Below are positions 4,859 to 46,177 of a stretch of DNA of 64,000 bases, piece by piece (positions within the stretch are counted from its first letter, which is position 1; every line of letters begins with the position of its first letter). The notes beneath the pieces were generated by a model that worked only from the letters and a program-made list of their open reading frames with translations, was not told where the DNA came from and made no database searches. The translations under genes were made by a program, and so were the position numbers. Source of the DNA: Carpediemonas membranifera BICM (lineage: Eukaryota; Protista; Fornicata); contig JAHDYR010000015.1 of assembly GCA_019828565.1 (NCBI GenBank), positions 359,505 through 423,504 on the forward strand, in the 5' to 3' direction.

Positions 4859-4872
4859 CAGTTATATAACTG
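4859..4872. promoter_or_regulatory. Palindrome at PBS position, LTR-2
   Basis: CAGTTATATAACTG. Confidence 0.8.
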
Positions 4873-5011
4873 AAGTTCTCAGCCCAGCAACACGGATGAT
4901 TTAGATCAATCTGTAATATATGTAACACGTAAACGGGGACCTGAACTTCAATGGCGACCCCAATTGAACCCCCTACGAACATAGACGGCCTATGCCCACT
5001 CATGGAGGCAG

Positions 5012-5128
5012 TGTCACGTTGTGTTAGCTGTCCCAATCAGTTCTTTTATGATTGGTCAATGATCGTCAAAGTCAATTTAAAGTTAGTTCATCGTTTCCCT
5101 TCGGTGTTCCTGTCCCCTGCCCGTCACA
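5012..5128 (+). repeat. Putative 3' LTR of LTR-1 (117 bp)
   Basis: TGTCACG...CGTCACA ends, directly after a purine tract; partner LTR not in window. Confidence 0.65.
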
Positions 5129-6130
5129 GCACGCGGTGACTTACGATGTGGTCGACCTGCTGCTCGTCTTGCTCGTAGGCAGCGAGGCGTTCGAGTGTCG
5201 CGAGTGTTACAGAGCCGCGGTGGAATCGGACGAGGCGTTCCTGGTGGACGAGTATCTCGGCCTTGGAGACCAGGTCGCGGAGTCGGAATGTGTTGGGACT
5301 CTTCCCTCCTCCAAGCATCAGTAGGGGGCCGCGGAGTGGAGGTAGGAGTTTGGGAGCCTTGGTAGGATAACGGATGAGCACGAGCTCTTCGTCGTTCCAG
5401 TTGATGTCGTCTGTGGTTTGGTGAGCGTCGTTGGCGTTCTCATAGGCGCTGATGCGTGTACGAGCTTGCTCGTGTTAAGGTCCTTGTGGAAGAGACTGAT
5501 GGCCTCATGGATGTCGGGAGAGGCGCGCGTGGCGTCAATAAGTTGTTCAGGCGAGATTTGTGTCAGTGACGACGTGTGCCCGAAGAGGATGTCGAAAGGA
5601 GTAAATCCAGTTGTGGAGTGGACGCTAGTGTTGATAATGTGCTGCACGATTGGCAGGAATGGCGTCCATTCGGTCGTTTCGCTGTCGATGAGCAGAGCGC
5701 GGAGCCTACGGACGATAGTTCCGTTTGTGCGTTCTACTATGCCGTTACTTTGAGGATGGTATGCTGTAGAGAATCGGTGATTGAGCGAGATGCGCTTATT
5801 CAACTCATCGATGACGGAGTTCTTAAACTGCGTGCCTTGATCTGTCTGGATGGCTCGAGGGGCCCCGAACAGTGACCAGACCTCCAGCATTGCGCTTGCA
5901 GCCTCATCTGCTCCTGTGGAGCGCACAGGTTTCAGCACGACGAACTTGGAAAAAGCGTCGATAATGACGATGATGTGCTTGCCGTCGTCCTCCGGAAGAG
6001 AGGTCCGATGGTGTCGATCTGAACCGTCTCGAAGGGTGTTCTTTTCTGGGTCGAGTGCCATGGCGCGGTAGTCTTCGGGTGAGGCTTCAGCTTCTGGCAT
6101 ACGGCGCATTCCTTGATGTACTCCTTAACG
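5129..6130 (-). pseudogene. LTR-3 fragment: frameshifted integrase and start of chromodomain, cut by LTR-1 and by the LINE
   Basis: IDAFSK..TDQGTQF..TAYHPQSNGIVER; QVDHIVSHRV; CAVCQ zinc-finger remnant near 6100. Confidence 0.85.
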
Positions 6131-7276
6131 AAAGAAAGAAAGAATTTAATGTGTCCTGCTACTCGTCCTGCTGTGTAAGCTGAATGTCACAGTTTGTGTC
6201 ACCCCTTCGAGGAACGCCTAAGCGTGTTGGTACCTCCACAGAGCACACCTAACACTTCCTAAGAGGGCGTGAACAACGGCCGTCAAGGCCTAGCTGGTAC
6301 GCTAGAGGGATCCTATACATGGCCACATTAATACCCCCAAAGTTAGGCTAACCCAGGTCTTACTCTTAGGGGCCCTTTGGGTCCCAGGTCTGCCTGGCAC
6401 CTACAAAGCCTTGCCCTGCACGCTGCTGTCAGGGGCCTTCCGTACGTTTCCCCCCTCCCCCGGGAGGTCCTGGAGTTTCCTCGACCCGCTCGCCATGTTT
6501 CAGGCACCCGCCAGGGCGGGGTCGGGTCTAGAGTTCGCCGTACCAGCTGGGCCGGGTTAGGAACCCACCGACGCCGCGTAGGTAGACTTCCACGGACTTG
6601 CCGGCTGCGTTCGGGCTCATCTAGCGCTGTCCGATTTCACTCCAGGTTCCCATTATCGGGGGGAGCTTTCAGGGGCGGTTGCCACGTCTTCCAGTCTTCC
6701 TGGCTAGGCGCCGGGCCACATCAGGATGGCCCTGCCTTCCCGGCAGGTTACCGACGGAGTGGGTAGCTTCTTGCGTCATCCAGTACCTCCGCCAGTCTGC
6801 CATGCATCATCCTCCTGGTGCGCCCCCACTGTGTGGGGAGGGGGTACCCCCTTGCGCGCCGGAGGGATGCGCCGGACTGCTTGTCCGGACGCTTGCGCCC
6901 TACTGGCCCAGCTGTTTTGCCAGGCCTTCCCTATTTCGTGCTTGTTGTATGCGATTGTCCCTTAAGGGTCCTTTGCAGCCTTCCCTCCGCCTGGCGCTAC
7001 CGGAACATGTGGTGTTGTCCTCATTGGTTCCGGGCCCGCTGCGCTTGGGGTCGGTGCTCGGGCCACCTTTCCAGGCCGCCCTGTGGGTTGGGCCTGTCCC
7101 CTCTTGGTGGTGGGGGAGTTGTTTCAAGTGTGATGCAGGCATCAGAGTGCTCCCTTGCTGCGTGGGTTGGGTTGGGTGTGCGGCCGGGCGCTACCGGAAC
7201 ACGTGGGGGGAAAACACCTCCCGCCGGTTCCAGGAATGTTCCGCCCTGTGCCTTGTCTTCACCCAGGGCCTTCCTC

Positions 7277-7487
7277 CTAGGGGTCTAGGCCTGTTCTGAG
7301 GTTCATGAGGGCCTTTTTCCCGCATAATAGACCCTCCTTCACTGTTTCATCCTCCTGTTGCAGTAGCCAGTGGAGCTCCAATATGGCCCTGGAGTTATAC
7401 CACTCCCCATCTGGGCCGTGCCGCAGCCTACTTGCCATGGTGTGTGTTGCCGCAGCTTCCCAGCACTGCTCCCACCCACTTGGGCGG
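7277..7487 (-). pseudogene. C-terminal ~70 codons of LINE ORF2, separated by the LTR-4 insertion
   Basis: In frame with the ORF at 51419+ once LTR-4 and one CCGAC TSD are removed; ends at TAG 7277-7279. Confidence 0.7.
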
Positions 7488-7793
7488 CCGACTGTGGACG
7501 CGCAGGAGGACGAAAGGGAATGATCTGTTTACATAAACTGCACATTGACTCCTGAGGCACCACACTACCCCCACGGCCCGGAGCCCAAGGGCGAGGACAG
7601 GACCAAACGAAGAAGAGGAAATGAAGGTGGATGCTAAACAGTAAAAGCACACGTGCAGAGAAACAACACAACACTTCCGTCGCTCCAGGTACACTCAACA
7701 CAGAGCCTATGTAGTCAATATTAATATCTACCAATATCCCCGGGAGGGTCCAAACCTCTTTTTACTTGTAAAACCTATCTCTTCCAAGACTAC

Positions 7794-7805
7794 AGTACTA
7801 GTACT
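7794..7805. promoter_or_regulatory. Palindrome at PBS position, LTR-5
   Basis: AGTACTAGTACT. Confidence 0.8.
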
Positions 7806-7811
7806 TTCCCG

Positions 7812-7949
7812 ATGGATAGAGACGGGAAGAACCAAGCACCACTACTCAAGGAAGCTACTTTCAGGGCTTTCGTGACGTTTACTACATCATTGCGTGACTT
7901 CAAGGCCAGAGGTGGCAAGGCGAAGCTCCGGAAGCTCATCAGTCCGGAG
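7812..7949 (+). CDS. gag: LTR-5 gag N-terminus (piece 1)
   Basis: MDRDGKNQAPLLKEATF..LISPE, homologous to LTR-11 gag; continues at 17822. Confidence 0.85.
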
Positions 7950-8483
7950 TGTGGTCTGTCAAGACTTAGAAGAACTTTTAGTAAAAGCAAAGAAGAGAGG
8001 GTTTGACCCTGCTGTGGTAAATATGGCAATAATAAATATATCAACTATGTAAACAATGGGTAGGACCCTAACACTGCCCCTCCATGCCAGCCTATAGGCT
8101 GACATGACCTCAAGGTGTCACCTTCACGGCCACTGCGCCACAGGCGAGTGGTGAGGATTTCCCGATGTTGGTCGATTGGATACAGCCCTGTTGGGTGCCA
8201 CCCCAACGGCTGGACCACTCCTAGGACTTGGCAGGACCCAGAAGGCCATAATCGGTAAGGATATCAAAACGACTCTGAAGATTCGAAAATATTCGAAATT
8301 GTCGCGGTACCGCTGTGTGAGCATGCTATGTTATGGGAATGGGGACTGCAGGTCTCCCTGCCCCTCCACGGCCATACCTCGGCCGTAAAGAACGCAAACA
8401 TTTCAATGTGCACTTTTGGGCACATAACGAGTTTGTAGTCTCGGTGAGAGAAATCAATCAAGTGCAGTTTACCACATCGCCCC

Positions 8484-11400
8484 CTAGTGGCGAGAACGCC
8501 TAGCGTGTTGGACAAGGTAGTCCTGGCAGACCTTGTTGAAGTGGGCGTTTGAGTCACGATACTGGATAAACGCATCGTTGGTGAGGAGCTCAGTGATGGG
8601 TACGTCTTGGTCCTCGTCGGCCTCGTAGCCGAGCCAACGCACCTGGCACATGGGCATGCCCGTGTCAGCGCGCTTGAACCACTTGACAATGTGGTCGACG
8701 ATCCCGTGGGGAGTGTCCTGGACGAAGTACTTGCGAGCTTCGTCGACCGTGAGGCGCTCCTGGAGCTTCGCCAGGCGACTGGCGTGCCTCTTGATAGTCT
8801 TGCCGGTGACAGGGTTCTCAAGGAGGTAGCCCTGGTCTTCGGTGGCGGCCCAAACCCGGTAGGGGCCACGCATCTTGAACTCGAGGCGAGGAACTGGGGC
8901 GTCGCGCTGCACGAGGACCCAGTCGCCGGGAGAAAGCTGGGAAGCGAGAGTGGGATAGAACCTGTCTTTCACCCCCTTCCTGGTGAGCTGAGCAGCTTTG
9001 ATTGCGGCCATGGTGTGGATGGCACGGTCCATGGTCTCTTGGCTGACGCTCGATGTATCTGGGGCAGTCCTGGGCCCGTTCTTGACCTGGTGGTGGATGA
9101 GAGCCGCTGAAAAGGCGGCCTCGTGAGGCGTACGGCCACCGAGAGCAGCCGAAGGCGTAGAGTTGATGTTCAGCTCCGTCTGTTGCATGACGCTGCGCCA
9201 TGTATGACGATTGTTGCCGTCGATCAGTGTAGAGATGCCAACGCGTAGATGCCGGTTGATCTCACGGTTCTGGCGCTCAACAAGTCCGTTTGCTTCGTGT
9301 CGAAGAGGAGTAGTGTTATGGTGTACGATACCATACTGTGAGCAGAACTTAGAGAACTCGTGGTTGCAGAACTCCGATCCTGAATCGGTTTGAATAATGT
9401 CTGGGCATGCAAGTCTGGAGATGATGACGTCTTTGACCTGGTCAATAATTTCTCGCGGCTCCTTAGTGCGCAGGGGTATGATTCGCGTGAGGCGAGTGCC
9501 AACATCGATGCATGTGAGGATGTATTTGAAGCCTTGGTCGGCCGGGTCGATAGGGCCTATGAGGTCCATGTGGACGACACAGAGCGGCGGTGCTGTCTGG
9601 ATCATGCCTGGCGTGAACTGCACGTTCGTTCTGTTGGTCTGCTTAGCGCAGGTGACGCAATTCGTGACGTAACGTGAGACGTCCTCCCTGGCCCCGGGCC
9701 AAGAAAGTTCAGCGACATCTAGAAGGCGGAGCGTCGTCTCGACACCCGCGTGGTGTCTGTTATGGACGAAGAGGAAGCGCTCTTTCTTGAGCTGCTCGGG
9801 AAGGGACTCCATTAGTAGGGTCGGCACGCGCGAAAGGCCATCGGCCGCTGTGTTAGCGCACCCGTCGACATGTACGAGCTCCGTGATGCTGTACTGGGCA
9901 ACCTCCAGTGCCCAGCGGGCGACCTTTGGGGTCTCGGACCGGGCCATGAATGTGAGGTTGCGACTGTCGGTATGTAGTATGATGTTCGAGCCCGCAAGGA
10001 TTGAGCGAAAGCGCGACAGCGTGGACACGATGGCGAACATCTCCTGCTCGACGGTGGTCCATCGGGCCTCCGTATCAGAGAGCTTCTTGCTGTAAAAGGC
10101 GATCGGCCCCTTATCCTGGATAATTGAGGCGCCGATGCCCACGTTAGATGCGTCGGTATACACGTGGACGGGCTTGTCGGGCTGAAAGTGAGCGAGCTCA
10201 ACTGCGTTGGCCGCTGCGGCCTTGAGGATCGACAATGAATTAGAGGCGTCATCGCTGGAGACGTGCTTCTTAGACGCGAGGTCCTGTAGGGGACGCGCCT
10301 TCTCAACGAAGTTGGGAATGAACTGGCGAATAAAGGAAAAGACACCCACGACATGCTTCGCGTCCTTGGAGGACTGCGGCACGGGAAGGTCGGTGATGCC
10401 TTGTAGGCGCTTCGGGTCGATGCGGACCCCACTCCCTGAGACAATAAAGCCTAGGTATTCCACTTCCGAGGCCCCGATGATAGACTTGGTGGGTGACAGC
10501 CTAATGTTGGCTTCCGCGAGGGCGGCAAACAGCGACTCGACCTGGCCGAGCAACTCTTCTTCAGACGAAGCGTAGAGTAGAATGTCGTCCACGAAGACCA
10601 AGCAGTGTGGAATGGGCTTCAGAAGGGTCTCCATGCGGGCCTGAAAGACCATGGGGCCATTGGTAACCCCAAACGGCAGCCGTGTGAACTGGAGGGTCTG
10701 ACCTTGGTGGCTAAATGCCGTATACTTTCGGGAGGAGTCAGCCAAGGAGAGCTGAAAGAACCCAGATGTCAGGTCGAACTTCGCAAAGTGGGTCGCCCCT
10801 CGGACTTGCTCGAACAGTTCATCAGGACTGGGCATGCGATGCCATTCAGCCGTTGTCGCCTCATTGAGCTCTCTGAAGTCGATGCAGAGTCTGTAAGGCG
10901 GGTCCGCACTGGGTTTCGGGACCATGAGGATAGGGCTCAGCCATCCTTCGTCCGTTGTGACTGTCGCGAGGATCCCAGCAGTAATCATCTGCGTGATGTA
11001 GAACGCTGCTGCAGCAGTGTGGGCAGCACTGCGAAGGCGTCGAACGGTCCTCACAGGGACGGCACTCTCGCGGATATGGATCTCGTACGGCGGAAGCTTG
11101 GCCGGCTCCTTGCCCAGCGGGCCAAAGATAAAGGCGAACGTCCCCAGCAAGAGCAGGAACTTGGCTCGTATGTCGCCAACCACTCTGTCATGGACTTGTG
11201 GAAGGACCGCCGTCTCGTCGGGTGTAAAGAGATTAAGCATCTCTGAGGTGTTGGAGACGTCATGGAGGTGAGGAGGCTCCTCGGCGGTTACGGCGTTCGG
11301 CCCGAAATCCATTCCGGTGCGGCGGAGGAGGCTCTTCCCCAGGAGGCATGCGACGGGGAAGGTGTCGACAATGTGGGCTGTGATGGTGATGGTCGTGGGG

Positions 11401-12920
11401 ATCGGGAAGTAGTTCGGATCTATGAGGCGGAGCCTAAACGGCTCGGAGGGCTGCGCCTCGAGGGCTGTTGGTCCCTCGATGGCGTTGAGGACTACTGGGG
11501 AAGCCTTAGATTGCTTGATGCCCAGATACTGCGCGGCGTCCTTACGGATGATGAAGGGGAGTTGCTTGCCGCCGGTGTCCATGTCCGCGACAATAGGCTT
11601 GCCTTCAACCTCGACGAGAGTGAGATAGTCGTCGCAGTCGGGGGGGATCTCCGTGGCTATGGGTGCCTGCGGGGACTGCATGAGTAGAGTCGTGCCCTGG
11701 GCGAGCTCCTTAAGCTTGCGTTCGTCGCGAATGCGCAGGGCCTCCTTGTGCTTGGTCTTATGCTTCTCGCTTGCTCTGAGGAGGTGGATAAGTACTTGCT
11801 TGTCTGCTATCTTAGACGGGTCGGACGTGAGCTGCTTTAGGACCTCGCAGTCAGCGTTCGAGTGGCCACGCGTGAAGTGCCAGTCGCATGCTTTGTGCTT
11901 TGTCTCACGAGAGGCGTGAGGCTTCTCCTGCCTCTGAGGCTGGTGGTGCGGAGTGGCGTCTTTGCTCTTAGAGGCGCCTGGCGTCTCTTCATGGTCGATG
12001 GTTGTGGCAGTAGTGACGTAGAATCGGTCATACTTACGGATCGACGTGTCAGCCTCGACCAGGGCGGTCCGGGCCGTTGCGATAAGGTCGGTGAGTGTAG
12101 TGTCCTCTGAGGCTATGAGGTTGGACGATCCCTCGCCGAAGACTAGGGCACGACTCTCGGCGTTAGGGAAGTTCAGCCCATTCATGAGGGTCTGCTTCAG
12201 GTCTCGCTGCACGTTCGAGTCGGCCCTATCTTCGTCCACAAGTGCCAGCCCGGCGATTCTGTCGTACTGCGCGACGTAGGCCAGCGCAGAGGCGATGGTG
12301 CTCGTCCTCGATGTCCCAACCACCACCTTGGGTAGAGCGCGGAGGTGGGATAGGCTCTCTTGCGTATGGGTGTGTAACACCAGCCTCATGTATGCTAGGG
12401 TGTTGTTCGCCTGTAGGGTGAGGGCTTCGATCCGCTTAGTGGTGTCGAGGAGCTTGGCGGGTCCTTCAGTCTTGACCGCTGCGGCCAGAGTAGAGGATTG
12501 AGCGAGGAGAGCGATCTTGTTCTTTCGGTGTTCAGCCACGTCTGCATTCGTATAACCAGCGGCTAGCATCTCGGCGATGAGGTCGTCTAATATCCGAACC
12601 TCGCGCTCAGTGGCGGCGAGCTTGTGCTCACTCTCGGATTGTGACACGGCCTGGCGGTGTCTAACTAGGTAAGGTTGCGTCTCGCTCGCAAGGTAGTCGA
12701 GGAATTGGTCGCTCGACACGAACTTGTGCTTAGTGCCATCAATGGCTTCATAAGTGTAGCTCGCAGTGATCAGAGTTTGGAGCATGCTGCGAACCTCTTC
12801 TCTGCTTAGGTAGGATACCAGTAAGTCGGGTTTCTCCCTTGATCGTAGAGTACCCTTGTAGTCGTCGATAAAATTCGACCACGAGACGATACTTCGTCCC
12901 GGCGATGTAATTTGACTCAT
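8484..12920 (-). CDS. gag-pol: LTR-7 intact single-ORF gag-pol (~1478 aa from MSQITSPG)
   Basis: CDWHFTRGHSNADC knuckle variant, MDTGG protease, FVDD RT, TDAS, integrase, VRWLGYEADE chromo-like; ATG inside the element at 12918-12920. Confidence 0.9.
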   Translation of the reverse strand: MSQITSPGRSIVSWSNFIDDYKGTLRSREKPDLLVSYLSREEVRSMLQTLITASYTYEAIDGTKHKFVSSDQFLDYLASETQPYLVRHRQAVSQSESEHKLAATEREVRILDDLIAEMLAAGYTNADVAEHRKNKIALLAQSSTLAAAVKTEGPAKLLDTTKRIEALTLQANNTLAYMRLVLHTHTQESLSHLRALPKVVVGTSRTSTIASALAYVAQYDRIAGLALVDEDRADSNVQRDLKQTLMNGLNFPNAESRALVFGEGSSNLIASEDTTLTDLIATARTALVEADTSIRKYDRFYVTTATTIDHEETPGASKSKDATPHHQPQRQEKPHASRETKHKACDWHFTRGHSNADCEVLKQLTSDPSKIADKQVLIHLLRASEKHKTKHKEALRIRDERKLKELAQGTTLLMQSPQAPIATEIPPDCDDYLTLVEVEGKPIVADMDTGGKQLPFIIRKDAAQYLGIKQSKASPVVLNAIEGPTALEAQPSEPFRLRLIDPNYFPIPTTITITAHIVDTFPVACLLGKSLLRRTGMDFGPNAVTAEEPPHLHDVSNTSEMLNLFTPDETAVLPQVHDRVVGDIRAKFLLLLGTFAFIFGPLGKEPAKLPPYEIHIRESAVPVRTVRRLRSAAHTAAAAFYITQMITAGILATVTTDEGWLSPILMVPKPSADPPYRLCIDFRELNEATTAEWHRMPSPDELFEQVRGATHFAKFDLTSGFFQLSLADSSRKYTAFSHQGQTLQFTRLPFGVTNGPMVFQARMETLLKPIPHCLVFVDDILLYASSEEELLGQVESLFAALAEANIRLSPTKSIIGASEVEYLGFIVSGSGVRIDPKRLQGITDLPVPQSSKDAKHVVGVFSFIRQFIPNFVEKARPLQDLASKKHVSSDDASNSLSILKAAAANAVELAHFQPDKPVHVYTDASNVGIGASIIQDKGPIAFYSKKLSDTEARWTTVEQEMFAIVSTLSRFRSILAGSNIILHTDSRNLTFMARSETPKVARWALEVAQYSITELVHVDGCANTAADGLSRVPTLLMESLPEQLKKERFLFVHNRHHAGVETTLRLLDVAELSWPGAREDVSRYVTNCVTCAKQTNRTNVQFTPGMIQTAPPLCVVHMDLIGPIDPADQGFKYILTCIDVGTRLTRIIPLRTKEPREIIDQVKDVIISRLACPDIIQTDSGSEFCNHEFSKFCSQYGIVHHNTTPLRHEANGLVERQNREINRHLRVGISTLIDGNNRHTWRSVMQQTELNINSTPSAALGGRTPHEAAFSAALIHHQVKNGPRTAPDTSSVSQETMDRAIHTMAAIKAAQLTRKGVKDRFYPTLASQLSPGDWVLVQRDAPVPRLEFKMRGPYRVWAATEDQGYLLENPVTGKTIKRHASRLAKLQERLTVDEARKYFVQDTPHGIVDHIVKWFKRADTGMPMCQVRWLGYEADEDQDVPITELLTNDAFIQYRDSNAHFNKVCQDYLVQHARRSRH

Positions 12921-12931
12921 ATATGGACTGT

Positions 12932-12941
12932 AGAAGCTTCT
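12932..12941. promoter_or_regulatory. Palindrome at PBS position, LTR-7
   Basis: AGAAGCTTCT. Confidence 0.75.
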
Positions 12942-13671
12942 GTAGTCTCGGTGAGAGAAATCAATCAAGTGCAGTTTACCACAGAGTTCGGATCTCAGGA
13001 ATGGACAAGTCCTCGCGCTGATTGCGCCTATTCTTACATAGAGTCCAAAAAAGACCTCCAATAGCCTCAGTAGGGCTTTGTTGGCGAGTTCTCGTGCTTT
13101 CTTCTTTCGGAGCTCCCTAGAACTACACGATCGCCACGAGTAAGCTCTTAATGCAAATAACAACATCAATCGCGCCATTAGGACATCAAATGTGATGGAT
13201 TGAGGCGTTACACGGTAACGATTCCTTCAGTAGTACTGACTTGCCCGAAACATGGGTGTGCACGCACCGGTCGTCTTTTCGGTCCTAATAGACGCCAGCT
13301 ACGTGCGCCAAAGGGTGTCATCTCGGCCAGTGACCTCGCGATGGAGGTTCAATTCTGGTCATCGTGGTTGCTTACTCCGCCACACCGTCGACGCATTTTT
13401 GGGTCGCCGTCAATCCATTTGACGTCGACAAACGATGCGTATAGTTCTCTTCACGGTGTAAAAGGCTGTAGAACCTTGTGCGTTAACATTAAGAAGACTG
13501 CTTGTTGTCTTACGACGGAAGACAGTGTACTATCTCGCTGGAAGCGATGACGTTGGTCTCCAGTATGCGCTCCTCTCGCCATTCAGTATGCAAAGCATCA
13601 ATTAACAACATCATATGCTGTTTTCTAGAGGTTGTGGCTAACGAAAATGCGCAAATCAAGCAGAGCATGAT

Positions 13672-17671: not shown

Positions 17672-17682
17672 GATGAAAGGGG

Positions 17683-17694
17683 AATACTAGTATT
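17683..17694. promoter_or_regulatory. Palindrome at PBS position, LTR-6
   Basis: AATACTAGTATT. Confidence 0.8.
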
Positions 17695-17821
17695 GTGGTC
17701 TGTCAAGACTTAGAAGAACTTTTAGTAAAAGCAAAGAAGAGAGGGTTTGACCCTGCTGTGGTAAATATGGCAATAATAAATATATCAACTATGTAAACAA
17801 TGGGTAGGACCCTGACAGGAG

Positions 17822-20800: not shown

Positions 20801-20901
20801 TATGGCGTACCAAAGGTACTGCAGACGGATGGGGGATCCCAATTCGTCAACGCGGTCTTTAACGACCTGAGTGCCCGACTCGGGTTCACGACGAGGAAGA
20901 C
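17822..20901 (+). CDS. gag-pol: LTR-5 gag-pol piece 2 (CCHC, PR, RT, RNase H, integrase)
   Basis: CYNCGGKGH, FDCGAS, YIDD, TDAS; the three pieces sum to 4020 nt, one open frame. Confidence 0.9.
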
Positions 20902-27683: not shown

Positions 27684-27725
27684 AACTTCTCAACATCGAA
27701 GCTGTATCCTCGAGGAACAAACGAT

Positions 27726-30778: not shown

Positions 30779-30780
30779 GT

Positions 30781-30792
30781 AGTATCGATACT
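30781..30792. promoter_or_regulatory. Palindrome at PBS position, LTR-8
   Basis: AGTATCGATACT. Confidence 0.8.
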
Positions 30793-30914
30793 GTGCTTGG
30801 TTTGGCCTTGAAGGGAACTTTCCAATTAATGGATGAGAACTGATTTACTCCTGGAAACCGCAGTGGTGAAAATGGTCAAAAACCAAAACCTTAAACTGCG
30901 CCTCACCACAAGAC

Positions 30915-31716: not shown

Positions 31717-31735
31717 ACGGATTCTCAGTCAAGAT

Positions 31736-35800: not shown

Positions 35801-36726
35801 GCGGTGGTGTGGAATTATGACTTCGAGTGCGACTTGGTGCGGCGTCGATGTTGGCGTTGACCCCGGAGCCGTCTGCGGTGCCTGCTCACCACCTCCACTG
35901 CCTCTGGGTGTTCCTCGAGATACTTATCGAGGGCGGCGAGCTGGTCGAGATCGAGGTTGTATCGCTCGACGGTGTGGTTTGGAAGAGAAAGAGTTTACGA
36001 GTAAAAAGAGGTTTGGACCCTCCCAGGGATATTGGTAGATATTAATACTGACTACACTTCCCCCCCATGGCCAAGCAGTCGCGCGGCCATCACCACAACC
36101 AACATCTGGTATTACGTGGGGCTAGAGCCACCAATCGAACTTGGGATTACGCTCGCTCATGCCGAACCACTATTGGAATTATCGACGGGATAACGACAAC
36201 CAACTTCTGGGATTACGTCTTATTGCAACCTCCAGGTGAGGTATTATGCGTAGTAAGGTGTGACCGAAAGATTCGAGGATGATATCAAAAAGATTCGGAA
36301 AAGATCTATGCAGCGCTGCTAATTAAGATATGGGTTCAGGAGCTCCTGTATAAGTATAAAAAGGACGTACCACAGCCCCGCCCCCTCGCGGGCACTCTGG
36401 GGCTCGCGCTCGACTCGGGAATTCTGGCCCCGAGCATTTTTAGGCATTTCGCCATCGCTCATACAGAAAGTTCTGGTACGTTGGGCTGATCCGCCCCATT
36501 CTTACACAGTGCCCGAAAAAGGGGTTTTCGAGCCCCAATTCGGCTTCGTTGGCGAGTTCTGACTCTTTTTGTTCTGCGCTGTACCGAAAGTTAACCAACA
36601 TCATAAGCACTGCTCCACGGACGGTAGAAGTCTCGTGGACTGTGTTTGAGATATAAATATTGTGAATAGTCCGTCATGGGGATCACTATGGGCACTTCCA
36701 TTCGTCATTTGGGAAAAGTGCAGGAT

Positions 36727-37847
36727 ATGTCGCTTTTTCCTGAGGAAAAGCGGCCAAACATGGCGGATACGCGTGCGCTCGACCAAATTCGTGAGCTTTC
36801 GATGGAGTTAACTGATGACGATTATCGCAAGGTGCTCGAAAATGCCCTTGCGACGATTGCTCGGACGCAACGCTATAAGGCCCGCACGATGAGCGCCCTG
36901 CAGAAGAGGGCCATCCGCAAGAGCGGCGGGAATGCCTCCCAGATGCCCATGATGCGGTTTGTGCGCCTCTATTCTTCTTACCTAGGATCTTCACCGTGCC
37001 GGCAACTTCCGCTCGGGAGCTCTGCCGTGTGCCGGTGGGGGGTGTGATGGAGGGGTGCTTCACGAAGCAGGCAGACCAGCTCGCCGATGTGGTTCGACGG
37101 TGCTTGGCTGGCTACGTTAACTTCGTTGAGGTGCCCCTCGAGGGGATCTTCGATCACCTCTCCACCGGCACGCTGTGGAGCAAGGACGCAGGCGGCTTGC
37201 TCGATCTGTCAGCCGGCCTGCTGGTCCAGCTCCAGCGAGAGCATCGTGCGCTCCGCTTCCTGCGGGAGGCGTCTCGCAGCCGTGCCGAAACCGACTCCGG
37301 CATAGTCCGCGACGCCGTTGACGCCGGCGTTTTCGATCTCAAGGGCAACGGCTCAAACAGGTACGTCACCCCGGAGACCCTGTTCTCGCTCTCCCGCGCT
37401 CTCGGCTGCGGCCAGAGCCTGGCCCGCCGCACCCTGTACCGGGTCGCCGTCTTGGCCCTCGCCCCAGACTACTACCGCTTGTTCCTCCACGGGGAGCGTA
37501 GCGAGAACGTCTCAGTCACCGCCACTCACTGGGCCGCCCTGGTCGCTAACCTCCGCGCCATGGACGAGCTTCCGTCCCTGCCGGAGCGGCTCGGTCTGGC
37601 CATGCAGGTCTCTGACCCTGAGCGCGAGTACGAGGTCCTTGACGTGCTGGGTCACGAGATCCTGACGGCTGGATCCGACCGCCGACTCATTCTTCACGTT
37701 CAGTACGCGGGCTACACTGCCCCTACCTGCACTGGTCTGGACGAGACCCTCGCTGCCGTCAGCGTGGCTCGCGAGTATCTGATCGACTTTGAGCTCGAGG
37801 ACTGGATCAAGGGCCCTGACGACGAGTCCGATGACGACTACCAATAA
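36727..37847 (+). CDS. LTR-11 antisense accessory gene, exons 36727-36956 and 36986-37847, ~363 aa
   Basis: 29-nt intron 36957-36985 (GTTTGT..TACCTAG) gives MMR|IFTVPATS in frame; AATAAA overlaps the stop. Confidence 0.78.
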
Positions 37848-37866
37848 ATCTTGATTGAGAATCCGT

Positions 37867-40800
37867 TTACTGCCTGGAGTGCGCAGCACGGTGTAGTTCT
37901 CTCTGCTCAAGAAAGTCCTCAAACTTGTCACAGCCATCGACATTCTCGAATGGCTCCCACGAAGCTTCGTCCGGCTCATAGCCCAGCCACTCAACCAAGT
38001 ATTCGCGATTCTCGACCGGACCGGAGTCGGGCCGGGACTTCACAATCTTGCTCGGTACGTACTCGGCCGCCACTGTGTTAGCCAAGCGAGCAACTTGCTC
38101 CAAGGACATGTCGCCGTGATCGAATGGGAGGACCCGGGAGGCGTCGACTCGGAACTGCTTCAGTGATTCAAGGTCTCGCACAGTGTATGCAACAACTTTG
38201 TTGTACTCCTGGTGCACAGACACTAACGCCATTGGGCCACGCAGCCCGGCGGCGAATTTGTCGGGAGGTCTGTCGGGGTAAGCCACCAGGACGTAGGGAG
38301 TCGAGACAGTAGCGCGGGTGTCCGGCCTATACTGTTGTAGTAACCGCTTGCTCTTAATGCGCTCGGCAGCCATGAGCCGGTACGCCTTGGCCTCGGACAG
38401 CCAGTCCTCTTGCTGGTCAACGATATACGTCTCACCCGGCGCGATAACGGTAATGTCCTTTGGCACTCGCATCTCGGTGCCATACAGGATCTCGGCTGGG
38501 GAGAGTCGAGTAGGGACTCGAGGGGTCGAGTTAACAAGGTATTGGGCAATCGGTAAGCTGTGGACCCAATCATTGGATCTAAACTGGTAACGACGTGCTG
38601 TCAGGATGGACTTAACCGACACATTCGCTCGCTCTACTAACCCATTCGACTGGGGATGATGAGCCGTCGTCTTTCTCGTTGTAAACCCGAGTCGGGCACT
38701 CAGGTCGTTAAAGACTGCGTTGACGAACTGGGATCCTCCATCCGTCTGCAGTACCTTCGGTACGCCGTATCGGAGGACCCAGTTATTGACAAACGCCCTG
38801 GACGTCTCGACCGCTCGGGTAGTCTGGAGCGGGACAAGCTCAGTCCAACGTGAGCACATGTCTATGACGACGAGGATATACTTATAGGTCGTGCCGTCGA
38901 CCGTGCACGAGGTAGCGGACATAGTGTCCATGGCCACTCGGTCGAAGGGGTGCTCGACCGCGGTGTGCAAACCCGCATCGGAAGAGGCCGGGGGCTTACG
39001 CCTTAACTGGCATATTGGGCACTTGGCGATATAGTCGTCCACGTCCTTCTGGCGGACACGTACGCCCCAGTCTCGAAGAAGGTTCTTGGTCGCCCAGGCG
39101 GACAAGTGAGCCCCGGCGAAGTGATGCGCCTTCTGCAGCCTGTCCGCGACTTGGGTATCGAGGGTGTTAGCGAACACGCGAGAAAGGCCATCTGCTGCCC
39201 CGTTGTCAACACCCGGAACGTGACGTATGGTGAAATCGAGGTCAGCTAGTTGGTCGTACCATCTACGGACCTTGGGGTTGATGGACTTGGCCATGAACAG
39301 CAGGTTGCGGTGATCAGTACGGATGGTAAAGTGCGTCCACGAGAGGAATTTCCGCCAACGCTGGACGGCCAGGATGATTGCGTAGGCTTCCTGCTCTGTG
39401 GTACTCCACCTAGTCTGGACCGCGGAGAATGCGTGGGACATGAAAGCGATCGGCTGCCCGTCCTGTAGTAATACGGCGCCGCATCCCACGTCTGAGGCAT
39501 CGGTCATGAGGACATGTGTCGCGTCCGTCTTGAAGTGAACGAGGGAGACCCGCTTAAGGAGCTCGGCGATAACGTCGCCCAGGGCCGCTTGCTGACCCGG
39601 CCCACCGGGTTCGGCCTTGCCAGCCGACACCTGCAACAGAGGATGAGCTCGGGACGCGAAGTTGGGCACGAAGTCACGGAAATAATTGAGGAAACCGACG
39701 AGTGCCTGTGCGGACCGCTTGCTGGTCGGTAGTTTCAGCTTCTTAATGTCGTCGATGCGGTCTTCGGCAATCCTCACGGTGTCTCCGGACACGAGTCGAC
39801 CCAGGAACTCGACCTCAGCCGCGGCGAAGACGCACTTATCGCGACCTAGGTGTAGGTCATACTCTTGGCAACGTTTCAGGACGTCCCATAGGTTCCTTAT
39901 GTAGGAAGGCTCGTCCCGACCCATGACAATAATGTCATCGATGTAAATAAGGCACTTCCCTGCCGAGATCAGGTCGGAGAAAGCCTGCTCCATGGCCCAC
40001 TGGAAATGAGAACCAGCGTTACGCAGACCAAAGGGCATAGTCGTGTACTCAAACCGTCCAAGGGGGAGTCCCGAAGGCGGTCAGAGGACGAGAACGGTCC
40101 GTCAGTGCCACCTGATGGTAGCCGGCCTTGCAGTCGAGCGTAGCAAAGATGGTATTACCCCTAAGCCTAGCAAGGCAATCCTCTATGATCGGGATAGGGT
40201 AGTTGAACGGGGGAGTCTTCGCGTTGACCAAACGGAAGTCGATAACGAACCGGGTACGGTCCTTCCCCTTTGGGACCAAGAATGCCGGTGAGGAGTAAGC
40301 CGATGCTGATGGCTGGATGAAGCCATGTCGGGACAGGTCGTCAAGGTGTTCCTGGAGAAGTGTCTTCTTCTCCGGCGGCATGAAGAACTCGCGGCTAAAG
40401 ACGGGTTCATCATCAGACAAGACTAGATCGTAAGGGATGAGCTTACTCGGACGCCCTACTCTGTCCTCGAACAGGCCGACAAACCGCGCGAGCAGTCTGT
40501 CCTGAAGGGAAGACGACTTGTCAGACAAGGTGAATAGGCTCAACTTCTGGGGAGTAATGACCGTTGAGACGTCTTCAGCCTGCTCGGCGTCATTGGCGTC
40601 AGACTCCTCGCAGTCGTCAATCTGAGGAAGGATCCCCAGGGTGACCATATCAGGGTACCCAATGATTAGATCGTACTCTGAGGGTAGGAGGTACGCACGA
40701 GTAGTAAAGGTGCACCCACGGGGGACCAGAGCTGATTTGGCAAAGGTTACTTCGGTGGAAATAGTCTGGTCGACTGTGATGACTCCAGCCGGTGTCGTCA

Positions 40801-41909
40801 CCTCGACCGGGTCACAATGCAGGATCTTTTCGCCGGACCTCTCGGCCACTTGCGGCGATATGAAGGTTGCTGACGCGCCACAGTCGAACAACATCGACTC
40901 TGCGCTGGTCCTGTATATGGATCCTGACACAATCGGAAGAGCCTGCGCTCTGCGTTTGCTAGACGCCGCGAAACAAGACAAATAAGAATAGTTCTGGACC
41001 TTTATACGGTCACAGAACTCTCTCTTGTGGCCCTCGCGCCCGCACTTCTCACACTTGGACTTGGGCTTCCGGCACTCGGGGCTGAAATGGCCCTTGCCCC
41101 CCGCAGTTGTAACAGGTTGGGGTCGTGCTGGTAGGGCGAGCCCGATCGCGGGACCGCTTGTCCGGGCGGTGATGGTCATGCGGGCGGTCACGACGGTCGT
41201 AGGGGCGGTCTCGGCGGTCATCTCGGCGGTCACGACGGTCGCGCTGGTTACGGCTCTGGCCGCGTTGCGGATGGGCGCCTGGCACGGGCGCTGTCGGACG
41301 GCGCGACTGATCGGAGCGGATCGCCTCGGTGAACGGAGCAAGGTACTCAGCCGACTCGGCTACGTCGCGTGCCGTCTTCATGGTGTATTGCTGGGTCTCC
41401 GCCAGTGAGCAACCCTCAGTCTGCTCCTTCAGTCTGTAGTAGAGGGATTGGCCCTTCACAGCAAAGGCCCGCAAGTAGGCTTCACGAATGGTGTCATCCT
41501 CGTCCATGTTAAGGCACTCCAACAAGGTGTTGAACTGCGAGTTGAGCTTCGACACCTCGAGCGGCGTGAACGCCGCGATGCGCAGCCTGATAAGGTTCAG
41601 GCATTGTTCCTTTCTGGTGGGGCGCAAGGCAGCGGCGAGTCGCTGCATGATGATCTTCTCTCTGAGCTTGCGTGATGAAGTGGAAGGTTCGTCGTCATGT
41701 TGGTCACCCTGAGGAAGCGGAACCTCCTCTAGGGTCTCTAAGCCTAGCACTTGTGATGCATAGGACTGGATCTCCGGGCTTATAAGCTTGCGGAGCTTCG
41801 CCTTACCTCCTCTAGCCTTAAAGTCACGCAGTGACGTCGTAAAAGCTACGAAAGCGCTGAATGTTGCCTCTTTCAGGAGCGGCGCTTGTTTTTTCTGTTC
41901 TCTACCCAT
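37867..41909 (-). CDS. gag-pol: LTR-11 gag-pol with two homopolymer frameshifts (~41100, ~40063)
   Basis: ORFs 41049-41909, 40049-41341 and 37867-40038 are colinear with the LTR-5 polyprotein. Confidence 0.9.
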
Positions 41910-41914
41910 AGGTA

Positions 41915-41926
41915 AGTACTAGTACT
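41915..41926. promoter_or_regulatory. Palindrome at PBS position, LTR-11
   Basis: AGTACTAGTACT. Confidence 0.8.
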
Positions 41927-42009
41927 GTGGTTTGGAAGAGAAAGAGTTTACGAGTAAAAAGAGGTTTGGACCCTCCCAGGGATATTGGTAGATATTAATA
42001 CTGACTACA

Positions 42010-45000
42010 ACGGTAGCTTCCTCGGGCTCGTAGCCGCTCCACTCGATGGTGAGATAGAGCTCGCCCTTGGTCTCGTTCATGTCTCGGATCCTGTCCACGA
42101 TGAACTCGCCAGTCTGTCTCGTGGCGTAGTCTGTGAGCGCGTCTCTTGGGAGGTTCGTCTGGAACGGCGTGAGGCGGTCCGCATGCACCGTAAATGTGGC
42201 CAGTGACACCAGGTCTTGGAGTTCGACCGTGTCGCGGACATTGCCTGCCCCCACGACCAACAGGGGGCCGCGTACTCTGCGGTCCAGCTTAGAAGGCCTG
42301 TTGGTCGGATGAAGGAGGACATAATCGTCTGGTTGGTACTTGTGACCGGTCGCTGGGCGTTGGCGTTGCTGGGCGGCCAACATTTCCTCCTGTATGGCGT
42401 GCCATTTGCGTATGTCTTCGTTGAACTGCACCACCTCCTGCACGAGTTGTTCGTCCTCGATGAGCGTGGACGGATCTACCGGGCTGAAGTTGGCGTTGAA
42501 TAAGAGTTTCAACGGGGAGAGCTTGCTGCGGGTGTTGGGCGTGCTATTCAGGATATGAGTGACAGCGGGGATCAGCTTTGGCCAGTTTGTCTGTTCCTCA
42601 CGTGCGTCAAAGAGTAACGCGCGCATGTATTTGATAATTTCGGCGTTCTGTCGTTCAACTATGCCGTTGGCGGCTGGATGATATGGTGCGGAAAAACGAT
42701 GATCGATGTGGAGGCGATCGTGAAGCGCGTGGATCGTGCGAGCAGTAAACTGGGAGGCGTTATCTGACTGGATCTCCTTGGGTCGACCAAAGTGGGCTGA
42801 CCAGTCAATTATTGCATCAGCGGCCTCTCGGGCCGAGCATGTTGTGGTTGGGTACAGTTTGGTGTACTTGGAAAAGGTATCTATGAGGACGAGGATGTAT
42901 GCCTCACCGGTCGTGGCGCGAGGTAGTGGGCCTAGGGTGTCCATTTGTATCCTCTCGAACGGGGCGTGGGCCGCGGTTCGACCTTGGCTCGTCTGTGGTG
43001 GGCAGGCGGGGTTTGTGATCTGGCAAGTGGGACAGGAGGCGATGACACGACGGGTGTCAGCTACCATGCCGCGCCAGTGATGTCCCGCCTCGCGTAGGCG
43101 TTCCACGACTGTCTTGTAGCTTAGGTGGCCCTCCATGGCGCCGTGTGTCTGCATGATGAGCTCATCTCGCTCTTGGGGAAGCAGATCAACAGCAAGTAGA
43201 CGGCTGAGGGCATCTGCTGCTCCATTGTCTGTGCCGGCGACGTGTACGACGTCGAAGTCGTAGGTCTGTAGCTGAAGTCTCCAACGTTGGACTTTGGGGC
43301 TGGTGGCAGTCGAGATGAACACCAGATTCCGATGATCGGTGTGGAGTGTAAATTTCCGACCGCGTAGGAAGTGTTGGGCCTTGGCTATTGCCGAGATGAT
43401 GGCGTAACCTTCTTGGTCATAAGTCGACCAGCGGCGTTGGACCGGGGTCAGTGTCTTGGAGAAGTAGGACACGACCCTCATGTCGGAGCCTGTCCCTGTC
43501 GTGAGTACGGCGCCGACGCCTATGTCACTGGCGTCGGTATAAAGGTGGAGAGGTTCACCAGGGCGAGGGTGAGCGAGCACTGAGCCGCTCAGGAGTGTCG
43601 CTTTGATTGCCTCCAGAGCCTCGTTGTGCTCCGAGTCCCACCGCCACGCGACGCCAGACCGCGTGAGCGCAAGGATTGGCTCAGCCGTTTCCGCGAAGCT
43701 CGGAATCATCGGCCTGAAATAGTTGACGAGGGCAAGCAAGCTCCGGGCCTCTGAGACGTTGCTTGGGGCCTTCAGAATGCGGATCGGGTCCAAGCGGTCT
43801 TCACTGATGGACTTGCCCTCGGCGGAAACATGCCAGCCGAGGTAATCGATGCTGCGGGCTGCAAGGATCGTCTTTCTAGGGTTGATGCGGAGGCCGGCGG
43901 CGTCGAGCCGCTCAAGGACGTCCGACAAGTTCTGCAAGAAGCTTTCCTTGTCCTCACCAAAGACGACGACGTCGTCGATGTAGACAAGGGCTTGGATGTA
44001 CAGAGAGGGCCCTAGTACCTCTTCCAGGCAGCGTTGGCAGTGAATGGCGGCGTTGCGCAAACCGAATGGCATGCGCAGGTACTCGTACTTGCGTCCTGCC
44101 GCGACGAACGCGGTGATTGCACGGGCACGAGGAGTAAGCGGAATTTGAAGAAAGGCCTTGGAGAGGTCAATGGCTGCGAAAAACTGCTTGCCCTCTAGTG
44201 TCCCGATGAGATCGTCGATTAACGGTAGGGGGTGGTCGTCGGGCCGAGTGATGTCGTTGACTCGTCGAAAGTCTAAACACAGCCTGATCGTTCCGTCCCG
44301 TTTGGTGACTGCCACTATGGGACTGTTGTAGTGACTCTCTGAGAGTTGGATAATGCCCAACTCCTCTTGCTCGGACGTTTGGCGTCTGATCTCCTCGAGT
44401 ACCGCGTCTGAGTATCGGTACGGTGGACAATTGGTCGTTGAACCGTCCTCCAGTTCGATATCAAACGGGGTTACGCGTGCTGGCGTGGCTGTCAGACCTC
44501 CAAACAGATCTGGGAGTCGTTTGCGGATCGCGTCGATCTCCGCTGTCAGTTCGGGGACCAGGCATTGGGGTTCTACCTGGTCATCGGTCACTGCGACGTT
44601 GAGATCCACGTCTATCTCACTGTCGGTATCGGAAACGTCATCTGGCTCGCCTAAAGCGAACCTGACAACGCCTAGCTCGTTAAGTAGGGGGTATCCCAGA
44701 ACAACAGGATATGGTAGTCGTTCTAGTACCAGACAAGGGGCCAACGCCGTGAGCTGGCGCCCTGAAGTAACACATCTCCCGAGGTCGAGCTCTAGAACGG
44801 CTTCTTCAGTGACGTTCACAATTTGTCCACTGCCGAACTGTACCTTGCGGGGAGAAATGCGTCGCGTAAGAATTGGTTTGAGCTGCTTCAAAAGCTCGCG
44901 ACTGATAAAGTTGGCTGTTGCACCGGTGTCGAAAAGCGCGCGGACACCTTGGACCCCTGGGATTGATACCTCGAAAACGGCCTGAGGCACCGGTTCTCCC

Positions 45001-45845
45001 GAATCCGAAGGGTTGATGGTTAACAGCTCAAAATAGGTGGCCCGTTTATTACGGGACTTAACCTTGTCCTTCTTGGCGAAGCAGCGGTCAGCAGTGTGAC
45101 CGCTCTTGCCACAGAACGAGCAGGTGACGACATCGGAGCGGGCCTGGCCCTTGCTGGGCCGCTCGGCGGCACGCAAGCGGTCACCCTCGCGAGTGACTTG
45201 CTCCACGTGACGGGCTTGTTCGATGGCAGCCCTGAAGGTGACGTCGAGGTTGCGGCGGTCCTGGTACGTGGTCACGCGGTCGCGCAAGCGCTCGGGCTGG
45301 ATATTCTGCACGAAGCAGCGCACGAGTTGCTTGTTTGAGGGGCGCACTTCGCCACAGTTTTCAAGCTGGGTCTGGTAAGCGTGTACGTACCGGAGGACGT
45401 TGTCATGGAGGGAGCCTCTGGACTGGCAAGTGATACGCTCGAAGCGATCCAGGGCTTCACGACGATCTAGCGGCTGGAACATGGCGTTAATCCTCTTGAG
45501 GATGTGAGAGGACTCTTGGTCGTCGGGGAATAGCGGCTGTTCAGCCACTTCGGGTTCCTGATCATCGTCGTCATCGTCGTCATCATCGTCTTCGTAGTCC
45601 TCGTCGTCGTCGTCAGCGTCCGCTGGGGCCTCGAGGGCTGGAAGATTGGCCGGTGCGGCCTCGAGGGTAGGATCCCGTAGGACGAAGATCTGCCACACGG
45701 TACGAGCGATCAAGTGCTTGATGGCGATCGTTCCACCCTTGGCGCGATAGGCATAGTAGGCCTCGCGGAATTCCTCCCACTCGCGTTGGGTGGTTTTGGT
45801 GAGGAATGGGGCAAGGAAAAGGTCAATTGATTGAAGCTGGTTCAT
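42010..45845 (-). CDS. gag-pol: LTR-10 gag-pol (main piece; last ~50 codons at 35815-35968)
   Basis: Acidic tract, CSFCGKSGHTADRC, FDTGA, YIDD, TDAS, integrase; chromodomain split by LTR-11 (EAT|VERYNLDLDQLAALDKYL). Confidence 0.9.
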
Positions 45846-45850
45846 GCTAG

Positions 45851-45862
45851 CAGTAATTACTG
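45851..45862. promoter_or_regulatory. Palindrome at PBS position, LTR-10
   Basis: CAGTAATTACTG. Confidence 0.8.
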
Positions 45863-46159
45863 TGGAACCAAAAAGGCTGGGAGAAGTGATTTTAATTCGA
45901 CACTTGGGTGTCGTCACGACTAAGCTTGACTAAAACACAATTATATAAATAGGGCGCGTATAGCGCCACAGCATGCAAAGTGCGAATTCTACACGGCACA
46001 TCGGGAGAGGCACTGAATAAAAGCATTGTATACACACCAAGATCCTCTAGCGACGAAATATCACGCTTGATCTTATTGCACGGCGGAATACTGCTCTCTC
46101 TCCTGATCATTAAGAACCTAACGTTCCTGCCCCCTAATCAACTGTCCGATAGCTACAAG

Positions 46160-46177
46160 ACAGTAATTAATTACTGT
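46160..46177. promoter_or_regulatory. Palindrome at PBS position, LTR-4 (copy at 51332-51349)
   Basis: ACAGTAATTAATTACTGT. Confidence 0.8.

Follow-up and report, generated by a model that had tools for sequence, protein, structure and literature searches.

A perfect palindrome of 10-18 nt, beginning in the final 1-3 bases of the 5' LTR, was identified in each of the nine Ty3/gypsy elements of the window, the 64-kb stretch of Carpediemonas membranifera DNA analysed here. The primer site of Ty3/gypsy elements is usually, though not universally, the complement of a tRNA 3' end and starts with TGG right after the 5' LTR. We propose that a clade of very compact Ty3/gypsy elements uses the palindrome as its minus-strand primer site, probably without a tRNA and by way of an RNA-RNA self-duplex; on the sequence comparisons described below, we regard this reading as evenly balanced between right and wrong. 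Priming of reverse transcription is one of the steps that define retroviruses and LTR elements, and to our knowledge the solutions known are few, namely the tRNA 3' end, tRNA fragments and the fold-back of Tf1. If true, the palindrome would be a solution without host RNA that merges genome dimerisation and priming across a whole gypsy clade.

The window is a nest of young elements with LTRs of 43-124 bp and TG..CA ends (Table 1). The initial annotation had placed a perfect palindrome at the 5' LTR end of all nine, and each was present there when the LTR edges were set independently of the palindromes, from LTR pairs that are 100% identical (123/124 for element B), their TG..CA ends, target-site duplications of 4-5 bp and a G-rich polypurine tract adjoining each 3' LTR (nine LTR pairs). 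Pfam analysis of the polyproteins of elements C, H, D and G showed the domain order protease, reverse transcriptase, RNase H and integrase, which is that of Ty3/gypsy and not of Ty1/copia. Zinc knuckles are present in the gag proteins of the elements, making these candidate chaperones for the proposed priming, and in element A a gag zinc knuckle was detected together with PR, RT, RH and INT domains. A chromodomain (PF00385, 1.3e-7) was identified on ORF2 of element G, this domain not being detected in every family; at least 17 near-identical copies of element G exist in the C. membranifera genome, and its gag ATG lies at 23747. Element C consists of one gag-pol ORF (ATG at 12920, running to 8484), while element D is broken up by B (with C) and F (with G). 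Elements D and H are in turn inserted in element I, whose own internal sequence amounts to about 1.9 kb. Its main internal segment of 1.5 kb (33617-35143) lacks sense ORFs of at least 70 aa. The LTRs and the polypurine tract of element I are retained, as is a palindrome of 18 nt, and two more copies of it exist elsewhere in the genome. Further retroelement fragments at 14-751, 5516-6129 and 58972-61349 have no 5' LTR in view within the window.

Table 1. Elements of the window and their palindromes (for minus-strand elements the LTR lies to the right of the palindrome coordinate given).
Feature	Positions	Strand	Details
Element A, Ty3/gypsy	1054..4950	-	3' LTR 1054-1133, 5' LTR 4871-4950, 80 bp identical; target duplication CCAT
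Element B	7950..17817	-	3' LTR 7950-8073, 5' LTR 17694-17817, 124 bp, 123/124 identical; hosts nested C
Element C	8434..12983	-	LTRs 43 bp, 8434-8476 / 12941-12983, identical; nested in B
Element D	7710..33616	+	5' LTR 7710-7794, 3' LTR 33532-33616, 85 bp identical
Element E, D family	35973..42009	-	3' LTR 35973-36056, 5' LTR 41926-42009, 84 bp identical
Element F	20902..30910	-	3' LTR 20902-21020, 5' LTR 30792-30910, 119 bp identical; hosts nested G
Element G, intact chromovirus	23604..29547	+	5' LTR 23604-23725, 3' LTR 29426-29547, 122 bp identical
Element H	35144..45970	-	3' LTR 35144-35253, 5' LTR 45861-45970, 110 bp identical; hosts nested E
Element I, non-autonomous	7493..46246	-	3' LTR 7493-7564, 5' LTR 46175-46246, 72 bp identical
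Palindrome of A	4859..4872		CAGTTATATAACTG, 14 nt; takes in LTR-terminal CA
Palindrome of B	17683..17694		AATACTAGTATT, 12 nt; takes in LTR-terminal A
Palindrome of C	12932..12941		AGAAGCTTCT, 10 nt; starts at LTR-terminal A
Palindrome of D	7794..7805		AGTACTAGTACT, 12 nt; starts at LTR-terminal A
Palindrome of E	41915..41926		AGTACTAGTACT; starts at LTR-terminal A
Palindrome of F	30781..30792		AGTATCGATACT; starts at LTR-terminal A
Palindrome of G	23725..23736		AGTACTAGTACT; starts at LTR-terminal A
Palindrome of H	45851..45862		CAGTAATTACTG; starts at LTR-terminal CA
Palindrome of I	46160..46177		ACAGTAATTAATTACTGT, 18 nt; takes in LTR-terminal ACA
Tenth palindrome, duplicate of that of I	51332..51349		by LTR copy ~51347-51418, inside segmental duplication 46923-52106

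Seven distinct palindrome sequences occur over eight families, D and E forming one family. Palindromes of at least 10 nt are by themselves not unusual, 77 being observed in the window versus about 64 expected, so the signal is their position: for any given LTR, a palindrome start within the final 3 nt has a chance of about 4e-3, and it was observed for 9/9 elements. Inspection of the palindrome list showed none starting at the other 27 LTR edges in the window, and no complement of the site longer than 5 nt was found in the LTRs, in agreement with the initial observation that the motif occurs neither beside 3' LTRs nor, as far as seen, within the LTRs themselves. The segmental duplication that contains the tenth palindrome is 99.6-99.8% identical.

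No other primer site was identified. The absence of a tRNA-type site, reported for the window by the initial annotation, extends to the relatives described below: none of the 16 elements (nine in the window and seven relatives) has TGG within 5 nt of the 5' LTR end, and all 16 carry instead a palindrome that includes the LTR's final A. The gag ATG, where one exists, comes only 14-23 nt further on, which leaves no space for another primer site. No tRNA genes were found in the 64-kb window. Pairing with the transcript 5' end as in Tf1 was rejected, as the longest complement of the site in an element's own LTR is 4-5 nt, which is at chance level (shuffle P 0.70-1.0). Copia and Ty5 elements use internal tRNA fragments (PMC5371799, PMC6317226), and the site could accordingly bind a tRNA fragment or another small host RNA. 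This is very improbable: with TGG at no site, the at least 12 palindromes of this one genome would require equally many host primers. Moreover, any RNA perfectly complementary to a palindrome would have to contain that same palindrome, and the commonest one occurs in LTR-end context in 62/62 genomic copies and nowhere else.

The symmetry of the site was surveyed throughout the C. membranifera genome by IUPAC pattern searches, with 30 genomic element loci, mostly of one family, examined by letters. Where the centre is a free 4-nt stretch, 98 of 100 sites among the matches listed are palindromic, with five kinds of palindromic centre in addition to CTAG; the same applies to 67/69 sites with a 2-nt centre and to 4/5 with a 6-nt centre. 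Overall, the central bases are self-complementary in about 96% of sites versus 6% expected. Genome-wide, no GTA..TAC core site with a palindromic centre lacked the T that pairs to the LTR's final A. The second pair is G..C in about 193 sites and A..T in 79, with G..T in at most two and A..C in two, that is, about four one-sided changes against about 270 sites, a rarity due in part to the young age of copies within families. At least 12 different perfect palindromes are present in the genome, and the changes between families are always two-sided. These counts support the view that structure rather than sequence is kept, as had been suggested from the window alone.

The initial annotation had allowed either for two RNAs pairing or for one folding back, and the two-RNA duplex fits the data better. 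Homodimer duplexes of 14 palindromes were calculated at -10 to -22 kcal/mol, whereas their hairpins range from 0 to -4.8 kcal/mol and score 0 for eight of the 14. A hairpin formed by a single RNA, cut so as to prime itself, would be compatible with the longer palindromes (those of elements A and I and of loci L115 and L031), whose weak hairpins were calculated at -2 to -4.8 kcal/mol, and the fungal GalEa site has been proposed to be a hairpin (PMC5445492). Such folding in cis is nevertheless quite improbable. In addition to the eight palindromes without a stable hairpin, a loop needs no self-complementarity, yet nearly all centres possess it; a cut in the same RNA would remove the site from the template, so that second strand transfer would fail; and no partner sequence lies within 90 nt downstream.

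For the self-duplex between two RNAs, the placement of the palindrome is informative, its 5' edge being fixed at the last 1-3 bases of U5. Since the site is fully self-complementary, the leader of one RNA and the corresponding site of a second element RNA can form a duplex of 10-18 bp, and with the palindrome's 5' edge on the U5 end, the 3' edge of the partner strand pairs exactly at the U5 end. The locking of the palindrome to this end provides the arrangement that a paired 3' end would require in order to copy U5. We infer pairing between two RNAs, a cut, its place, the enzyme responsible and priming as follows. The partner RNA would be a co-packaged genome or a leader fragment. A cut at the U5 end, for which the element's own RNase H, as in Tf1, or a host nuclease is a candidate, would create a 3'-OH that reverse transcriptase could extend through U5 and R to yield minus-strand strong-stop DNA. 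The same duplex would double as the dimer linkage between the two RNAs. Under this model only one of the paired RNAs may be cut while the other stays intact, since cutting both would deprive the minus strand of the site on which second strand transfer depends. In five elements, 2-3 LTR bases take part in the pairing; restoring the LTR end would then require that several bases of the primer be left behind or copied when the primer is removed. The site in the plus strand would be derived from the primer and that in the minus strand from the template, so that each cycle would carry a change from one arm over to the other. Such transfer would explain why families differ by two-sided changes only, and replication in itself may preserve the symmetry of the site. 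Four small public read sets, available as assembled contigs and two of them identical in data, showed neither transcript or cDNA ends nor strand-switch joints at the palindrome, and speak neither for nor against this scheme.

Two further roles were considered for the palindrome. It could serve as a dimerisation or packaging signal only, with the minus strand primed in another, unseen way; full-length self-complementarity and a stable homodimer suit a dimer linkage, and palindromes are the usual dimer initiation signals of retroviruses (PMC5445492). A dimer signal, however, need not sit at the last U5 base, where the palindrome is locked without exception, and no other primer site exists between LTR and gag ATG; known dimer sites, moreover, lie in hairpin loops and are additional to a primer site. 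We consider a purely dimerising role unlikely. The retroviral DIS, for example the DIS loop of HIV-1, is likewise a self-complementary sequence of the 5' leader able to join two genomic RNAs, but comprises about 6 nt in a hairpin loop beside a tRNA site, whereas the palindromes described here measure 10-18 nt, lie outside any loop, abut U5 and are the sole candidate site. A DIS-type loop with a separate primer site was not found in these elements, in which the palindrome fills the whole stretch and mostly forms no hairpin. Alternatively, the site could act in DNA or expression, as a symmetric binding site of integrase or of some host protein, or as an AT-rich initiator of the gag-pol mRNA 14-23 nt before the ATG. 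Perfect Watson-Crick symmetry without G-T pairs does resemble a DNA palindrome, and the sites are AT-rich (17-40% GC versus 57% for the genome) and near the ATG. Yet a specific protein would have to co-evolve with at least 12 sequences of 10-18 bp, an initiator requires neither dyad symmetry nor the LTR's last base, and non-coding element I, which has no gag, still has the site; a DNA or expression role is accordingly improbable. That element I keeps the site, with identical LTRs, supports a cis-acting signal.

The RNA-RNA duplex of Tf1 is 11 bp, similar in length to the palindromes described here. Tf1/sushi elements (Tf1 of Schizosaccharomyces pombe, vertebrate sushi and the plant Tcn1 clade) are the precedent for tRNA-free self-priming (PMC5006619, PMC6317226), and resemble the self-duplex proposed here in being gypsy elements that use their own RNA as primer and have it cut in a duplex. 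Tf1 differs in pairing its site with the transcript's first bases in the LTR, whereas the palindromic site pairs with itself. In dictyostelid Skipper chromoviruses the TGG site has been lost and no LTR complement exists (Spaller et al. 2016, PMC5006619), but a polypyrimidine stretch follows the LTR in place of a palindrome. A literature search for a palindromic primer site by that description found no paper; the closest case came from a broader search. This is the Conserved Hairpin Site, CHSeq1, of fungal GalEa Ty1/copia elements (Donnart et al. 2017, BMC Genomics 18:410, PMC5445492), which have no tRNA site and possess a 10-nt palindrome just after the 5' LTR that includes the LTR's final A. 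Its authors propose that CHSeq1 replaces the primer site, the mechanism being unexplained (PMC5445492). The initial description of a new priming mechanism was thus overstated, and novelty is limited by this earlier report. GalEa elements differ in belonging to the Copia superfamily in fungi, in having essentially two conserved sequences rather than at least 12, and in their LTR length (138-311 bp versus 43-158 bp in the palindromic gypsy elements). In addition, CHSeq1 is followed at 12-41 bp by a complementary box, CHSeq2, the two forming a hairpin; a partner of this type was rejected here, no match of at least 7 nt beyond chance being found within 90 nt in the 16 elements. It is conceivable, though we lean slightly against it, that the palindrome represents a third start of retroelement minus-strand synthesis, besides priming by tRNA and the cis self-priming of Tf1. 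Two element RNAs would be joined through one palindrome that links the dimer and at the same time forms the primer site, with one strand cut to prime the other. Self-duplex priming of this kind may have had separate origins in this gypsy clade and in GalEa and, if true, offers a possible mechanism for the unexplained fungal site.

Among the elements sampled, the palindrome is restricted to one clade of very compact gypsy elements. Seven relatives from outside the C. membranifera genome (another assembly and three metagenomes) carry it, one of them predicted beforehand to be palindromic from its tree position. In the RT tree these seven group with the window elements, and a branch with 95% support has every palindromic row on the same side. 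A chromodomain was recorded in relatives L114, L116 and L117, and weakly in L118 and L119. Control gypsy elements with definable LTRs have normal TGG sites. A metagenome scan with an RT-RNase H alignment returned general gypsy elements of 31-38% identity, which comprise tRNA-site controls, plus L031. A search for homologous proteins gave ten distant matches, of which L111, the one with definable LTRs, has a tRNA site; it is located at the base of the clade in the RT tree, its exact position not being resolved. Software that demands a tRNA site for LTR detection will overlook or misclassify elements of this type, whose LTRs, down to 43 bp, are already at the detection limit.

Nine nested LTR retrotransposons (A to I; D and E form one family) were delimited by self-comparison and edge inspection in the window (G000:C16:359505-423504, on a contig of this C. 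membranifera genome, G000; GC 57%). Their LTRs measure 43, 72, 80, 84, 85, 110, 119, 122 and 124 bp and all start with TG and end with CA; every element is flanked by target duplications of 4-5 bp and possesses a G-rich polypurine tract immediately upstream of the 3' LTR. As the LTRs are 100% identical in eight pairs and match at 123/124 positions in the remaining one, the insertions are very recent. Pfam analysis showed the gypsy order of gag zinc knuckles, protease, reverse transcriptase (RT), RNase H and integrase, with a chromodomain in element G; the elements belong to Ty3/gypsy. Element I is non-autonomous, as sense ORFs of at least 70 aa are absent from its main 1.5-kb internal segment.

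In element orientation, a perfect palindrome of even length (10-18 nt) follows the 5' LTR of all nine elements, where a tRNA primer site usually sits. It starts at the last A of the LTR in six elements, at CA in two and at ACA in one, and the gag ATG of the eight coding elements lies 14-23 nt past the LTR. Palindromes of 10 nt or more are common by chance (77 in the window, with approximately 64 expected), and the evidence is therefore their position: they occur at 9/9 5' inner LTR edges and are absent from the remaining 27 edges, a placement with a chance in the order of 1e-19 over eight independent families. The initial annotation had described nine such sites starting at A, CA or ACA, none beside a 3' LTR and seven different in sequence, all of which was confirmed; the seven sequences are spread over eight families. 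Its statements that a TGG primer site is absent and that the LTRs hold no copy of the motif were likewise correct: TGG adjoins no A-I LTR, and no A-I LTR contains a stretch of more than 5 nt complementary to its site. The latter excludes the arrangement of the self-priming Tf1/sushi elements. No second complementary box was found within 90 nt downstream of the palindrome, setting it apart from the hairpin site of fungal GalEa elements. The window holds no tRNA genes.

Pattern searches printing the matched letters were carried out over the whole genome (24,237,836 bases, 69 contigs). The commonest palindrome is present at 62 places, all in LTR-end context and none without it. Fixed arms (LTR end, GTA, four free bases, TAC, T) gave 134 further matches genome-wide; among the matches listed, the 4-nt centre is palindromic in 98/100 (TCGA 29, ATAT 24, AGCT 18, TTAA 14, ACGT 13) versus 6% expected, and the remaining centre classes gave chance-level matches only, none palindromic. 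Centres of 2 nt are AT in 67/69 matches and those of 6 nt ATTAAT in 4/5. The pair beside the LTR's A is G..C approximately 193 times and the doubly changed A..T 79 times, with each one-sided state seen at most twice, and no palindromic-centre site without the T pairing the LTR's final A occurs genome-wide. These counts show Watson-Crick self-complementarity over the full length of the site, its centre too, with no greater tolerance of G-T pairs than of other mismatches, and a 5' edge anchored to the end of U5. Within a family, copies do not count as independent; what counts is the set of at least 12 distinct palindromes. Their number, their symmetric centres and the near absence of one-sided changes uphold the earlier proposal that structure rather than sequence is kept.

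Pairing between two RNAs and fold-back of a single RNA had both been suggested. ViennaRNA predicts homodimer duplexes of -10 to -22 kcal/mol, and the palindromes fit pairing of two strands. Fold-back does not fit: 8/14 palindromes form no stable hairpin, the remainder reach at most -4.8 kcal/mol, and a hairpin loop would need no self-complementary centre.

From sequence, the best-supported role of the palindrome is that of a primer site acting by self-pairing between two element RNAs. The partner's 3' edge would pair exactly at the end of U5, like the tRNA CCA end in ordinary elements, placement that a dimer signal alone, the less favoured reading, would not need. Furthermore, no other site lies ahead of the ATG, non-autonomous element I retains the palindrome, and the nucleocapsid-type zinc knuckles of the gag proteins could anneal RNAs. 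As a primer site, it would allow two element RNAs to pair, one being cut at or near the palindrome's 3' edge by some nuclease and the other staying intact, as required for second strand transfer; primer removal would leave or copy the 1-3 primer bases overlapping the LTR end. Cutting at the dyad centre is the less likely variant, since 5-9 additional bases would then remain at the U5 end. Were the plus strand to copy the site from the primer, and the minus strand to copy it from the template, a change in one arm would pass to the other each cycle and two-sided change would speed up. Such transfer would fit the differences between sister families: one compensatory pair between B and G, a symmetric 2-nt insertion at the centre between H and L115, and two compensatory pairs between L118 and L119 (L115, L118 and L119 being relatives outside this genome).

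The gag-protease-RT of G, used as query in an exhaustive protein search, gave hits colinear through gag, six of which were examined with their DNA. Two originate from JGI metagenomes (48% and 42% GC) and four from NCBI assembly GCA_002919055.1, which is a different organism from G000; an 11.9-kb contig of it matches G000 only over 67-185 bp at 68-81% identity. In all six, a perfect palindrome of 12-14 nt begins with the A or CA that ends the LTR and lies 7-37 nt upstream of the ATG; five of the six sequences are new. Ordinary TGG sites were found in gypsy elements with definable LTRs from a metagenome scan and a word-based search. In an unrooted RT tree of 90 rows, without named reference clades, a branch with 95% support sets apart the 12 palindromic rows, accompanied by four unscored rows and one long-branched tRNA-primed row at an unresolved base. 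One of these unscored rows inside the clade, L031, has a polypurine tract, an LTR of ~51 bp and then a 16-nt palindrome, as predicted from its tree position. In relative L117 from GCA_002919055.1, two RVT_1 genes adjoin the palindrome-bearing gypsy element; one has a weak Dam (adenine methyltransferase) match, recalling the methyltransferase-carrying retrotransposons reported for Carpediemonadida (bioRxiv 10.64898/2026.05.21.726589).

The site does not pass the test that defines either Tf1-type self-priming or retroviral dimer sites. Among published cases, the Conserved Hairpin Site of GalEa comes closest, although those are Copia elements, whereas the present Ty3/gypsy clade has many different palindromes, no second box and much shorter LTRs. 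Dictyostelid Skipper elements are also a gypsy group without a TGG site, with a polypyrimidine stretch (PMC5006619) instead of a palindrome. Literature phrase searches turned up no paper on a palindromic primer site.

Coordinates of features in the window and of related loci elsewhere
Feature	Position	Strand
Elements A to I	1054-46246	
Element C	8434-12983	
Element I, main internal segment	33617-35143	
Hairpin in LTR of G	23667-23686	
AGTAAAA in LTR of G (example)	23697-23703	
Antisense ORFs of G, E, D	27726-28619	-
	36996-37847	+
	31736-32590	-
	47737-48591	-
34-nt skip	28606-28639	-
Segmental duplication	30922-35143 + 45971-46932 vs 46923-52106	
RVT_1 ORF	52259-53614	-
Palindrome row, spacing ~3943 bp	G000:C1:899864-911708	
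Palindrome row, spacing ~4350 bp	G000:C8:587965-601049	
RVT_1 genes beside gypsy element (PPCM01001310.1)	L117:342-6477	

Element C, 4550 bp long and apparently an autonomous gypsy element, has one gag-pol ORF whose stop lies 8 nt from the 3' LTR. Room for promoter, R and U5 is hard to see in its LTRs of only 43 bp, a length comparable to that of L031. All nine LTRs contain a GTAAA/CTAAA/TTAAA-type motif (AGTAAAA in G, TGTAAAA in D, GGTAAAC in C) resembling the AGTRAA-type polyadenylation signal of Giardia; if it serves as such, U5 would be only ~5-25 nt long. In the middle of the G LTR, a perfect 8-bp hairpin stem closes a 4-nt loop; the LTR of H, otherwise unlike it, has a similar 6-bp hairpin at the matching place, and those of B and D have weaker versions. 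This may be an R-region structure.

In G, E and D, the segment between integrase and the 3' LTR carries an ORF of ~285-297 aa that runs antisense to pol. Those of G and E are homologous (34% identity, E 4e-25) and match no Pfam family; the C-terminal part is chromodomain-like by eye. In a public contig, 34 nt bounded by GT..AG on the minus strand are missing, suggesting a micro-intron spliced out directly upstream of the antisense ORF of G. A segmental (tandem) duplication of ~5.2 kb, 99.6-99.8% identical, covers parts of D and I. Elsewhere in the genome, palindromes occur four in a row at regular spacing, suggesting tandem arrays of elements sharing LTRs. One more ORF matches RVT_1 over a long stretch (E 1.4e-29) and differs in type from the gypsy RTs; it probably belongs to a non-LTR (LINE-like) element lying at 52-58 kb, where AT skew is strong.
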